Assembly: GCA_011109175.1 (NCBI GenBank)
Contig: RDEW01000041.1
Location: 124,001-188,000, forward strand
Direction: 5' to 3'
Length of the DNA stretch: 64,000 bases
Source of the DNA: Dicyema japonicum
Lineage: Eukaryota; Animalia; Dicyemida
The notes below the pieces were generated by a model, which made no database searches, was not told the origin of the DNA, and worked only from the letters and a program-made list of their open reading frames with translations. Both the position numbers and the translations under genes were made by a program. This document shows, one piece after another, positions 17,380 through 23,496 of the stretch (its first letter is position 1; every line of letters starts with the position of its first letter).

Positions 17380-17733
17380 CCTGTTAAGCGTCATATGTCA
17401 TTTCTAAAAAATTTGTAGTAAACATTGGCTACGACATATGTCGTATAGTCAAGTTGGCGGTATTATTACTAATTATATGTCCGTTTTTTGTGATTGGCGT
17501 TATTTTGCCCATAATGGGTGTCCGACCGAAAAGATAGAAGTTACCTGAGGAAGAGATAAGTGATATTTTTGACGAATCAAGTGACTTTAGTGATTTTGAA
17601 GATGAAAGCGATGAATCAGAAATCAGTGACGAATCATCCAGCGACTATGGGTTAAACAAAAATTTTAATAAATATAAAATTCCCAAAGAACGTCACAATT
17701 TGAGATAGGCAAAGCAAAGTGACGCTTAACAGG
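17380..17733 (+). mobile_element. Non-autonomous piggyBac derivative
   Basis: TTAA followed by TIR CCTGTTAAGCGTCA; perfect inverse TGACGCTTAACAGG followed by TAA; internal acidic N-terminal remnant EEEISDIFDESSDFSDFEDESDESE. Confidence 0.85.
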
Positions 17734-17833
17734 TAAGAAACACACACCAATTCTCACATGATCAGTTACAAGAATAAAATTTACCAAAACAAATATTCAA
17801 ATTCATCAGTTTTTAATATCATTAGTGATACAG

Positions 17834-18359
17834 CTAGCAGATATCTCCTTCTTCATTTATCACCCACGTGTGTCTGTTCTCTTTAAGCTTCCTGAAATAA
17901 TCCTCAACTAAACTCGAATATTTGCACGTGTTTGTCCCACTTTGTTAAAACCGGCTGTCCACAGGCGGCAGAAAATATAATCCGCCTCAGTTTTCTCATA
18001 CATTCTACTCTATTAAGGGACCGTCTCTCAGTGAGGTCTGAGCGCACCACAAGACAGTTGTCTTTGTTAATACGAGTAGGGTACTACATAACGAGAGAAA
18101 TCAACCATGCGGAGGATGTTGTCACGAATGGATTGGTGGACCCAGTCCATTTTGTTTATGTCCACTAGAATCTCCACGACTATGTAATTAGGGGCAAAAT
18201 ACATGTGGCCGACTGAGGGAGATCCCGCATGCTGTGTCCTTCTTTTATGGATATTTTGTCAATGGGGATCTCCCCAGTGAAGGTTGTGTCCACAGTTGTG
18301 GAACACATTCGAAGGGAAGTCAAAGAAAAGGTTGAACAAATGCGAAGAGGAGTCAACAT
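17834..18359 (-). CDS. MRPL58: Mitochondrial ICT1/mL62 (ArfB/YaeJ family) homologue lacking GGQ, 152 aa; introns 18202-18180, 18105-18084, 17913-17892
   Basis: Spliced ORF MLTPLRICSTFSLTSLRMCSTTVDTTFTGEIPIDKISIKEGHSMRDLPQSATFVEILVDINKMDWVHQSIRDNILRMYPTRINKDNCLVVRSDLTERRSLNRVECMRKLRRIIFSAACGQPVLTKWDKHVQIFEKLKENRHTWVINEEGDIC*. It has a transit-peptide-like N-terminus and ICT1 hallmarks F.G.IPIDK, W....R, RINK...LV.RSD.T and N...C..KLR..I..A. Not present in the ORF track. Confidence 0.82.
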
Positions 18360-18511
18360 GAGAGAGCAACAAAAATTAAATAATTATTTAAATTATTTCT
18401 TTATATTATTTATTTGAAATGTACATTTTATGACAGTAAGAACTTTTAAACAGTCATACTATCATGTGGCTATTAGATTTTTGAAATTAGCGCGCGTCAT
18501 GATTTTTATTA

Positions 18512-18759: not shown

Positions 18760-21724
18760 GAATGTCTCTCTTGGACGGCTCTCTCATTATTACTCATCTG
18801 ACATGTTAAGAACGCTCTTAATCATCTCTGGAGATATCAAACTTAATTCGGGACCAGCGAAATCTCTATCCATCATTCAACTCAACATAAATGGATTGAG
18901 AGGAAAGATAATCGAGTCATGAATTTCTTAAAGAAATGCGACGATGTCAACGTGTGTCTCCTACGATTTCCCCCCGCTCCAACACTTCCGGGATACACTG
19001 TTATCAGAAAGGATCGCCAGTTTGGCCGTGTAGGAGGAGTCATTACTATTGTCAAAAGTGAGATCGGGCACACAATAATGTCTTCTCATTATGATCCTCC
19101 ATCTCCCGTGGAATACATTGGGATCTCCATTCGAACAAACATGGTAAATATAACAATTGTGAACATGTACACTCCCCCTGCTGCCCCTGCCAAAATGAAT
19201 TTACCTTCTCCTTGACTTTGTTACCCCAATACCAACATTTGCTGATATGTGACCTCAACGCGAAACGCCCGACCTGGTACAAAAGCCAAGCTGCTGATGT
19301 CAGAGGAAATCTCTTCCTTTCTCTACTGGATCACTTCATAATCCTTAACGACTATCGGGTGAACACAAGAACATCATATAAAGCTTATAACAACATGACT
19401 TCACCTGACCACTCCTAAAATTGCTTCTCTTGCCAATTGGTTGTGATTTATGACTTCCGGAGCGATCAGAATCAAATCCTACATTAAACGTTTTGATCAC
19501 TAAACGAACAAGATTGTGAATTTATTTTTTTATTTTAATAACCCCGGGAACACGGAGAAAAAAATACAAAAGAGTCAAACAGTTAGGTGATCCCAGTCCC
19601 CGCAATCAATTGTTCCATTCGACGTCTATGATCTTCCATAGTCCCCACTACTTTCCGGAAGAGTCTTCTCTCGGTCTTGCAAAGGAATCCGATCGGGGAG
19701 GAGAATTTCCTATCCAATCGGGTATTTTTTGCCATACAAATGATCAGACGAAGCAAGTTTTCATCTTTCTCACAGACGCAAAGAAATCCGGAACCACGAC
19801 TACGGGTCTTAGCTTCTATGAGTAGTGGGTCGACTGTTGATCCATTACGTGGGCAAAGCATACTGATGGTTTTCTGGTGTATTGAGTTGACACTGTGGAC
19901 CATAGACTCCGATAGCGTGAATCTCCATGCAACGGAGGCATACTTAACGGCTGGCGCGTTTATTTGTTGGTAGAGGGTAGAAACAGAAAAGTCCACATTT
20001 CTCGGGGTCTTCCGGACAAGGGCGCGTAAAACGTTAATTTTCTTGAGGCCCCTGGTAAAATTGTGAATGAACGTAATCGACTCAAAAGCATCCAAAGGCC
20101 ATCACCAGAAATTATATAACGAATTCGAGTCCTTGATAGCGAAATAAAGAAAATCTCTAAGAAAAGGGAAATGAACGAATGGAGATAAATCACCTCCGCG
20201 TTTAACAAACATGGGTCCTTGTCAATCATGTGGAAGACTCTTTCCCTGATCAAAAACCCTGAGAAGAGAAACAGTCCTGATTTCAGCAAAAAGAAACTCG
20301 ACATGATGAAGTTCTACGCTCAGAGCAGCTACTTACCTCAAAAAAGTACGAGGGTCCTCCCTTGTCATTGATAATACCAAGATGTCGTCATGATCATATA
20401 TCGTTTTCACCAGTGGAGGTCAAAAATGCCATTAAATTTTAAAAACTAACCTATTTAAGCGGACCAGATAAAATTCTCATGATTGTTATCGAAAAGCTTG
20501 GACCCAAGGCACTCATAGCATTAACACAGATGTACAACATATCCATAAATAGAAACAGAATTCCAACTATGGAAGTTGTTCCAAATCCACGTAGTTCAGA
20601 AACCTGGAAAACCAAAAGAGTTCCCTTCTTATCGACCAATTTCCCTATTATGCACATTGTAAATAATTCTTGAGAAAATGGTTTAGGACCACATCTTACC
20701 CATATTCACCTAAGAATCCTTCCAGCACAGATTTAAGAAATACCTCTCCACAAGTACGCACTTGCAAACCCTCACTAACTTTATTATGGAGGGAATTGGG
20801 TCAAAGCACAGACTCCTCAAAACTTTATTGTGCTCGGTTGACATCCGTAGGGCTTTTGACTCGGTTCCCAGAAAATCTTAACGATGAAGATCTACTGCTC
20901 AGAAATCCCCAGCAATTTCAAAAGACGGGAACTTTCTCATTGGTAGAGCTTTTTAACTTATTCTTGCATGGTATTCAAATTGACTCGGACAAAAATTCCA
21001 TAACCCTTGCGTATGATGACACAATATATGCTTGCATGGGTTTATGTGCTACGACAGCTACGAACAAATTGTAAACTACTCTGGAAAGACTCCTTGAATG
21101 GTTGAAGAGAAATTCAATTTCAACGTCCACAGAAAAGTCATTTACTCTTTTTTTACGTCGAATAAAAGCTATCAAGTTATTCGGCTAAACTATTTTTGAA
21201 TGGTGAACTAATCCCAAATCAGGAACAAGCCAAGATTCTGGGAGTAACATTTGATACTCTCATGACCTTCAGCATACATGTGTCAAACGTAATCAGTGCT
21301 TCGGCACGAAAGTTTAACTTTTTGAAGGTGCTCGTCTCAAAATTTAAAGAATTCTCAAAACAATCATTATCAACGTTATACACTCAATTCATCGAACCAA
21401 CTATGGATGTGCAGCTTGGAGAACAAAACTTGCCAAAACAAACATTGATAAGATCAACTCCGCCGAATCCAACATGAACAAAACAATCTCTCGAATCACA
21501 GGAGTACCAATAAGGGCAACCCCATTTGAAGTCCTTGTGTGGAATTCCGGCGACATATTCACCCAAAATGAAAAACCGTCAGAAGAACGGTGTTATCGAA
21601 AATGTGTCGGTTCTCAATAACGACACCGGGAAGATGAGAAAATTACTGAGAATAGCCGGGATCACCTGATGGTGTTTTCCTTTTAGTTAGTTTACCTGGT
21701 GATTTTTGACTTATTAATAATAAT
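18760..21724 (+). mobile_element. Near full-length decayed LINE ORF2 (APE + RT + 3' UTR), family A-related
   Basis: IIQLNINGL, PGYTVIRKDR..GGV, NMYTPP, CDLNAK, AYDD and KILGVTFD; TAA tail at ~21715-21724; contains a nested inverted LINE. Confidence 0.88.
19530..20100 (-). mobile_element. Nested LINE 3' fragment (family D)
   Basis: KKINVLRALV..Y.SVAWRF..GSGFLCVCE..RLDRKFSSPIGF; the same block recurs at ~34590, ~52580 and ~62700. Confidence 0.8.
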
Positions 21725-22929
21725 GTGACTATTACCTCTTACCAAATCGCCTCTGGGGGTCCATTCATTTCCTGAACAAATGTCATAAAGTCTAGGCTAG
21801 CCAGAAAAGGGAATTCTAAGTTACGGAGAGATGGACTTCTGGAAAGGACTTTTCTCAAATACCTCTGGAATCTATAATCTTTACAAATCAAGGTTATTGC
21901 AAGTTGAGCTATGAGCATCCGACTCCCAATAAATGCTTGTATGGGCTCTAGGGAGAAACATCGGGACGAGATGAGGTCTCTGCTGGAGCTTGTTGGAATC
22001 ATGTAAGTAGTTAATTTAGTTTTATCGTAGTCTTTTAGAATTTTCATTTAACTGTATTCGTTGACCTCTCTAAAGTCTCCTCCAGGTTCTGTCCAATAAG
22101 TTCGTCTTCTCAGTCGTCCCCTGTTTTTCAAAGATAGTATACTTTGGATAACTAAATCTCAAACTTTCTTAATAATGAAGCACTCTGATCACAAAAGCAC
22201 ATAAAAACGCTATGAATTTGTAATTTTAGACTATCCTTGTTTCACATTCGAGAATAACCGATAATATTTGTTCCCCAAGACAAATATTGTTCAATTTTCA
22301 TCCAATTTCGACCAGAAGATTAGAACTCAGATATTGGCGTTGCTTATTTTAAAATATCGATTGAGAAGGGGGACGATAAGTTATATTCATCTTGTGGATT
22401 TTAAGTGCATCAAACCTTATTCATCTTGCATGGAAAAGGTTGTTCTGTGGTGCATCATAGTAATTTTTCCTATTTTTTTAAATTAATAATTTTTAGAGCA
22501 AATAGATTTGTTTAAGTGCTAGAAACAACTTTCTTTACTTATCACTCTAAATCACCGTGAGACTAGCGTTGCAAGGGTAAAAAAGGGCGACCTTGACATC
22601 CCCCCTTTCGGAGGAAAGTGAAATTTTTAATTTTGTCTAAAAGCTGATTGGTGTTCCAAAAGACAAAAAACTATGGTTATAGGTGCTGTATATTACCCAC
22701 TAAACGCGTTTAGTTCTTTTAACAATTATAGTACTCCCTAAGCACTTATAGTACCCCTATACAATTATAGTAAACCCTAAACAATTATTACCACCATAAA
22801 AATAATAATTTTTGACCATAAAACAACAAACATTAACAGTTAGAACTTATCTCCCAAAATCTTCTTGAAAATGGGCAGTCATATTTAAATCCATAAATGA
22901 ATGAAAAAATCGAGATGGCACTTCACTAT

Positions 22930-23156
22930 CACACTCTCTTACTCTTCCTTCTAGCGAAATGTCCGTCTCCACCCGTTTGAGTACATCGGTGTTTGTTATT
23001 TTGGAAATCCAAGGGATTCTTAGTAAACTCATCCAGCACCAAAGTTCAAAAACATCGATTTTTCGTCTATCCGCCTTTTTCAGTATCCATGATTCTGCGC
23101 CGTATAGAAAAACCGGGAACACGTTTGCATTAACCAGTCTGCTTTTAGTCTGTTAG
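22930..23156 (-). mobile_element. RTE (BovB-like) LINE C-terminal fragment
   Basis: FPVFLYGAESWILKKADRRKIDVFELWCW..LLRIPW is the typical RTE C-terminal signature. Confidence 0.85.
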
Positions 23157-23496
23157 TAAAAAAAACGTGTTTGTTGTGGTGTTTATACAGTCTCTGAAAC
23201 TTATCCCGATATAGGAGCTGTTTATGGGGAAAGACTGGCAACCAACCCTGTATTTAAATGCCAAGAAAATCTTATGAGCAAACTCTTCTACGATCTAATT
23301 AAAAGCAACGTTACTGCAAAACATGAAATCCACGTAGCACCAATGACAAACTATCCATGTAGTACCACATGGCGTTACAAAACATGGCATTTTCCCATGG
23401 GAAGAGAGTTGTTCCGTCAGGTCTTATTAATATTTTAAAAGTCATTAAATAAATCGGAAAATCCTTAAGACAATTTTTAAATTTAAATTCCTTCAC

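Follow-up and report, generated by a model that had tools for sequence, protein, structure and literature searches.

A predicted GGQ-less ICT1/mL62 paralogue alongside a canonical copy in the genome of Dicyema japonicum

A four-exon gene with 22–23-nt introns

The window analysed here is a 64,000-nt stretch of Dicyema japonicum contig RDEW01000041.1 (positions 124,001 to 188,000, forward strand), and all coordinates without a contig name refer to it. On its minus strand, from 18359 to 17834, lie four exons whose joined reading frame is intact and encodes 152 aa (157 + 74 + 170 + 58 = 459 nt, that is, 152 codons plus TAG). The features of this gene, hereafter the GGQ-less gene, are as follows.

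18203..18359, minus strand: exon 1, 157 nt (52 codons plus 1 nt), starting with ATG and encoding a Ser/Thr/Leu/Arg-rich N-terminus, then the first strand IPIDKISIK and a degenerate loop SMRDLPQSAT where the family has SSGPGGQNVN
18180..18202, minus strand: intron 1, 23 nt, GT..AG, phase 1
18106..18179, minus strand: exon 2, 74 nt, encoding VEILVDINKMDW..ILRM
18084..18105, minus strand: intron 2, 22 nt, GT..AG, phase 0
17914..18083, minus strand: exon 3, 170 nt, encoding YPTRINKDNCLVV..., the domain core and linker
17892..17913, minus strand: intron 3, 22 nt, GT..AG, phase 2
17834..17891, minus strand: exon 4, 58 nt, encoding the 18-aa tail KLKENRHTWVINEEGDIC followed by TAG

The ATG is preceded, 9 codons upstream, by an in-frame TAA, the exons have 45% GC vs. 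32–36% in the introns, and the chance of 152 open codons in random sequence of the local composition is about 3e-5. A sequence-only reading of this DNA had described a 152-aa spliced ORF that is missing from the ORF track; it was reproduced here with the same end coordinates, and at this place the ORF list carries no more than two fragments (59 and 48 aa). In searches of the assembly (67,542,437 bases, 377 contigs), the locus was single copy.

Intron 1 is the sole GT..AG option that joins frame 1 to frame 3. Other splice choices for intron 2 (31 nt) and intron 3 (17, 28, 33 or 49 nt), tried by hand, broke colinearity or moved a conserved boundary, and splicing at 23/22/22 nt alone yielded both 152 aa and the ancestral boundaries. 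Such lengths are normal for this genome, since the median dicyemid intron is about 27 bp (PMC6543705), the mean in the published D. japonicum assembly, which is 49% repeats, is 38 bp (PMC6736024), and D. japonicum is among the few animals with introns shorter than 30 bp (PMC13644364). The first 23 residues of the protein include 2 Arg and no acidic residue, and their likeness to a transit peptide was judged by eye only.

A plus-strand frame at about 17547–17708, whose end is a strongly acidic stretch rich in Asp, Glu and Ser, is convergent with the GGQ-less gene, their stops being about 130 nt apart. Directly upstream of the gene, window positions 18800–23200 hold LINE-like fragments, among them one endonuclease-like (..IIQLNINGLRGK..) and one resembling a reverse-transcriptase C-terminus (..LYGAESWILKKADRRKIDVFELWCW..). 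Pfam searches with nine neighbouring ORFs, the LINE-like ones included and each taken as a single ORF, returned no family.

Exon 3 matches the ICT1/mL62 family

When exon 3 was searched against the PDB, the matches were ICT1/mL62 chains only, at weak E-values of 0.4–1.3, and no MTRFR chain was among them; exon 1 and the frame-3 piece of the gene gave no PDB match. An exhaustive HMMER search with exon 3 of 1.8 billion representative proteins yielded one real relative, P0002 (E 1.1e-4), with 45% identity over 47 aa and 46 bits. P0002 in turn matches human ICT1 at E 1e-9 and is thus an unambiguous ICT1. The top match of the same search, P0001, is a repeat protein aligned over a short low-complexity stretch and was set aside. 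As catalogued, P0002 is a mis-called 92-aa ORF consisting of one ICT1 exon plus translated intron; it originates from the 1-kb genomic contig L008 (Logan SRR23677160 contig 43622) of an animal with normal-sized introns.

A profile built from exon 3 of the GGQ-less gene together with its counterpart in a paralogue on C57 (described below) retrieved ICT1/mL62 chains at E 4e-5, with ArfB/YaeJ lower down the list. The ICT1 likeness claimed earlier is therefore backed by the PDB chains, by P0002 and by the profile, and exon 3 is assigned to the ICT1/mL62 family on its predicted sequence. W and I-N-K are 17 residues apart in the GGQ-less gene, in the one on C57 and in mammalian ICT1, and by this spacing the ICT1-specific inserted segment is predicted to be present in the GGQ-less protein. 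By spacing and colinearity, exon 2 would correspond to the ICT1 strand past the GGQ helix and to the ICT1-specific inserted helix. We infer an ICT1 fold for the GGQ-less protein from colinearity only.

In the Pfam check proposed in the sequence-only reading, no single exon of the gene matched RF-1 (PF00472) at E≤10, and the locus was not among the matches of a genome-wide PF00472 scan. The GGQ, which is the most informative part of that model, is absent here. A features search of the ESM Atlas gave a weak RF-1 lead only (rank 4, score 0.86). When P0002 and the ORF of an MTRFR-like gene on C201 were used as queries in word-index protein searches, the query itself or nothing was returned, from a database without the proteins of this genome. 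Neither these searches nor the HMMER search yielded an orthologue of the GGQ-less gene.

The exon–intron structure is that of a canonical ICT1

The ICT1 exon of L008 occupies bases 152–321 (170 nt); its phase-0 start lies four codons ahead of R-I-T-K, and its end is in phase 2. Exon 3 of the GGQ-less gene is likewise 170 nt long, with a phase-0 start four codons ahead of I-N-K and a phase-2 end at the codon where the L008 exon ends. The position and phase of intron 2 are common to the GGQ-less gene, the start of the L008 exon and the C57 gene. Intron 3 agrees in codon and phase with the 3′ boundary of the L008 exon and is also in phase 2 in the C57 gene, and for intron 1, the C57 paralogue has a phase-1 intron at most 1–3 codons from the same place. 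These shared positions and phases, with the 170-nt exon, fix introns 2 and 3 and exclude a retrocopy; a retro-pseudogene in which frameshifts pose as introns was ruled out on the same grounds. Consistently, the hallmarks of a processed pseudogene (lack of introns, stops, frameshifts) are absent from the gene, which has three introns at ancestral positions.

Because the exon length and phases match those of L008, the ancestral intron positions appear to have been retained while the introns shrank. The title of Ogino et al. (2010), as cited in PMC6543705, describes the same for dicyemids: ancestral intron positions kept, introns shrunken.

The GGQ loop and the basic tail are lost

The loop of the GGQ-less protein reads ..KEGHSMRDLPQSAT... 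Counted from the IP.D strand, human S84-S-G-P-G-G-Q90 aligns with S-M-R-D-L-P-Q, so that Ser and Gln stay in register while the two Gly are replaced by Leu-Pro (GGQ to LPQ). Past the loop, the segment N-V-N-K-V-N-S-K-A is four residues shorter in the GGQ-less protein, beside intron 1. No GGQ was found in any of the six frames of 17700–18500, a stretch that contains no N. Strings like GGNGGNCAR, with 1 mismatch, occur only some 240 nt further downstream, as the linker CGQ of exon 3 and in another frame. This CGQ falls on human A-S-Q in the alignment and is coincidental.

The tail encoded by exon 4 has 18 aa with 3 K+R and 4 D+E, a net charge of –1, and ends in ..VINEEGDIC. In an ungapped alignment, its N-R pair and a hydrophobic residue fall on human N184-R185 and L188, and the Lys/Arg-rich end is gone. 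Both losses reported in the sequence-only reading thus held up, the first by LPQ at the aligned place and zero GGQ in six frames, the second by the acidic end.

To our knowledge, the GGQ loop is near-invariant across the family and its release-factor relatives, and the domain core is ordinarily less conserved. The loss in the GGQ-less gene is regional: the loop keeps only 2 residues, and the core is still 34–45% identical to distant ICT1s. Since the loop was erased while the less conserved core was kept, uniform neutral decay would not give such a pattern.

A canonical ICT1 and other release-factor genes are present in the genome

The PF00472 scan of the genome identified three other loci, on C57, C201 and C312.

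C57:1054904-1055437: ICT1-like paralogue of 152 aa, four exons and three 24-nt introns in phases 1/0/2
L001 1468-1893, minus strand: the MTRFR/C12orf65-like gene on C201, an intronless 141-aa ORF with SSGPGGQNVNK and a basic end
C312: mtRF1a-like gene with the sole PCRF domain in the genome, followed by an RF-1 domain

The C57 paralogue resembles the GGQ-less gene in its 152 aa, its three micro-introns and their phases 1/0/2, with introns 2 and 3 aligned, and differs from it in keeping SGGHGGQKINK and a basic tail (23 aa, 9 K+R, 2 D+E). Its exon 3 matched ICT1 chains first in the PDB (E 0.0085), and a profile search of the genome found two ICT1-type exon-3 loci only, those of the GGQ-less and the C57 gene. 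The two copies share 21% identity in exon 3 and a weak colinear match in exon 2 (E 0.027). The GGQ-less copy is closer than the C57 copy to the canonical animal exon P0002 (46 vs. 33 bits), and the C57 copy is slightly closer to mammalian ICT1. In composition, the C57 gene has 25% GC vs. 45% in the GGQ-less gene, a striking gap between paralogues.

The best solved relatives of the C201 ORF are C12orf65/MTRFR (E 5e-11). Thus, of the gene kinds that the sequence-only reading had proposed to look for, a GGQ-bearing ICT1-like gene (C57) and an MTRFR-like one (C201) were found outright, and the mtRF1a-like one (C312) was found with a 1-nt shift. In the C312 gene (L002 ~1600-1670; C312 ~896535-896605, minus strand), the frame runs to ..FRASGHG and then shifts by 1 nt in a run of four G. 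Beyond the shift, it continues as (G)GQHVNKSRTAVRIIHTPTG in the other frame, and an intron would not fit. The shift falls inside the SGHGGQ codons, which encode the catalytic motif of the genome's main release factor, and reflects either an assembly error in the homopolymer or a genuine lesion or frameshift.

The earlier reading had named a second canonical ICT1 elsewhere as the finding that would reduce the GGQ-less gene to a diverged paralogue, and it had taken mitochondrial ribosome rescue to be either lost or done by another factor. The C57 gene, with its GGQ and basic tail, is such a second copy and contradicts the view of the GGQ-less gene as the only ICT1 of the genome. Another factor is available in the C57 and C201 genes, both with GGQ, and the part of the claim concerning loss was not supported. 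Because canonical ICT1-like and MTRFR-like genes are present, the genome is predicted not to have lost mitochondrial ribosome rescue, and the GGQ-less gene is best described as a putative diverged paralogue; a GGQ-less predicted protein does not in itself imply that loss.

The GGQ-less copy is probably retained for a non-catalytic role

The reading that we favour, with a probability of roughly 0.55, is that the GGQ-less gene is a real single-copy spliced nuclear gene encoding a catalytically dead ICT1/mL62 paralogue that has been retained for a non-catalytic role. ICT1 would have been duplicated; the C57 copy, with MTRFR, would have kept peptidyl-tRNA hydrolysis on stalled mitoribosomes, and the GGQ-less copy, presumably unable to hydrolyse peptidyl-tRNA or to sense an empty mRNA channel, may have been kept for a task that needs neither ability. 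That the gene is functional at all seems rather probable, as the open frame, the intact splice sites, the ancestral exon length and the regional nature of the loss argue for selection acting on the core once the loop had been freed.

The strongest competitor, though considerably less probable, is a decaying or unexpressed duplicate, a pseudogene still too young for a stop or a damaged splice site to have arisen. This copy has lost both functional hallmarks, its surroundings are repeat-rich, with LINE-like ORFs at 18.8–23 kb, and the canonical C57 paralogue would make it dispensable for rescue. However, 152 codons have stayed open (P ~3e-5 in random sequence), all six splice dinucleotides are undamaged and the length of exon 3 is precisely the ancestral one; moreover, the most conserved segment was obliterated while the core remained 45% identical to a distant animal ICT1, which points to long selection after the GGQ loss. 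Somewhat less probable again is a neofunctionalised protein that works away from the mL62 site, for example as a regulatory or RNA-binding factor. A missing clear YSLDK motif and missing BS-2 aromatics (both described below) would suit such a protein, and GGQ-less members of unknown function, mtRF2b and the extra ICT1 of ticks, have been listed by Duarte et al. (PMC3472500). Yet nothing positive speaks for another function, and the core and exon structure are kept as in ribosome-bound ICT1.

Two further explanations are very improbable. If the missing GGQ were an assembly artefact, an indel or a collapse in the loop, local indel errors of the kind possibly seen in the G-run of the C312 mtRF1a-like gene of the same assembly could be invoked; but no frame of the locus contains a GGQ, the stretch has no N, and 14 codons would have to be wrong with the frame preserved. 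The least probable explanation is that the GGQ-less gene is the only ICT1/mL62 of the genome, with ICT1-type rescue lost or passed to an unrelated factor. The Pfam RF-1 scan misses the GGQ-less locus, which could then seem the sole mL62-like gene, but the protein encoded at C57:1054961-1055335 is ICT1-like and colinear, has both GGQ and basic tail, and exon 3 of its gene matches ICT1 chains before any others.

A structural mL62 role is possible

In the human mitoribosome, ICT1 bridges the body and the central protuberance; its GGQ, some 70 Å away from the PTC, does not contribute to binding, and the bound form cannot perform rescue (PMC8786322; PMC12319706). A copy without GGQ and basic tail fits a purely structural role, and we regard this role as possible without considering it the likelier outcome. 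Metazoan ICT1 binds the mtLSU through an N-terminal motif, F/Y-K-S-X-Y-S-L-D-K/R-L-Y-P (PMC12319706). Its best match in the N-terminus of the GGQ-less protein, ICSTFSLTSLRM, has 4 of 12 identities and is matched by 8.6% of shuffles, and nearby non-coding frames score equal to or above it. In the C57 copy, the motif had no match, and a search for an upstream exon carrying it near the GGQ-less gene gave noise-level matches only.

Further, hydrophobic binding contacts of human ICT1 are Y142 and F144 in BS-2 and L188 in BS-3 (PMC12319706). In the ungapped alignment, the GGQ-less protein has R and S at BS-2, which are not hydrophobic, and W at BS-3, which is hydrophobic. These aromatics are not universal, as K and I stand in their place in P0002, a canonical invertebrate exon.

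A more specific proposal, which we hold only tentatively, is that the GGQ-less copy is the permanent structural mL62 of the mt-LSU and the AT-rich C57 copy a free, ArfB-like rescue factor. How one ICT1 serves as both fixed ribosomal protein and free rescue factor is an open question (PMC8786322). If the proposal is true, duplication of ICT1 split both jobs in dicyemids, and these animals would hold a natural answer to the question of integration vs. rescue. With a GGQ-less, tail-less copy beside a canonical one, the genome offers a naturally occurring separation of function that can be put to the test.

Comparison with known systems

The GGQ-less protein resembles mammalian ICT1/mL62 (MRPL58; PDB 3J7Y chain p, 1J26) in a colinear core, which comprises the IP.D strand, W with 17 residues to I-N-K, and the ..N..EC..K.R..I helix. 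It differs in LPQ, the 4-residue deletion past the loop, and an 18-aa tail of net charge –1 in place of a long basic extension. The dicyemid also has two ICT1 genes, whereas the mammal has a single dual-role gene.

The closest precedent is in ticks. In Ixodes scapularis and other Acari, species reported to lack C12orf65, Duarte et al. (2012) noted "one extra ICT1 without GGQ", an expressed protein about as large as the canonical copy (PMC3472500). As in the dicyemid, where both copies have 152 aa, a GGQ-less copy stands alongside a canonical ICT1 of similar size. In contrast to the ticks, which reportedly lost C12orf65, the dicyemid genome has an MTRFR-like gene, and the tick protein is expressed, whereas the dicyemid one is predicted from genomic sequence. 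A literature search found no later follow-up of the tick GGQ-less ICT1. The two GGQ losses were presumably independent, the lineages being unrelated; the dicyemid gene would thus be a second instance, in an unrelated lineage, of a pattern that is itself not new. A 2025 study describes GGQ as conserved in every eukaryotic ICT1 protein (PMC12319706). The tick gene and, as predicted, the dicyemid gene are exceptions to this claimed universality.

Teleost Ict1 is also a natural uncoupling of the two roles of ICT1, and it is the mirror image of the dicyemid case: GGQ and tail are kept, and the mtLSU-binding motif is absent (PMC12319706). The dicyemid case complements that of the teleosts, which lost the ribosome-binding motif instead. 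MTRFR/C12orf65 (PDB 7A5H chain C) is another small protein that has an RF-1 domain but none for codon recognition; it lacks the ICT1-specific helix, and its dicyemid counterpart is the separate locus on C201. This MTRFR-like gene is one unbroken ORF, though the genome reportedly averages about 6 introns per gene.
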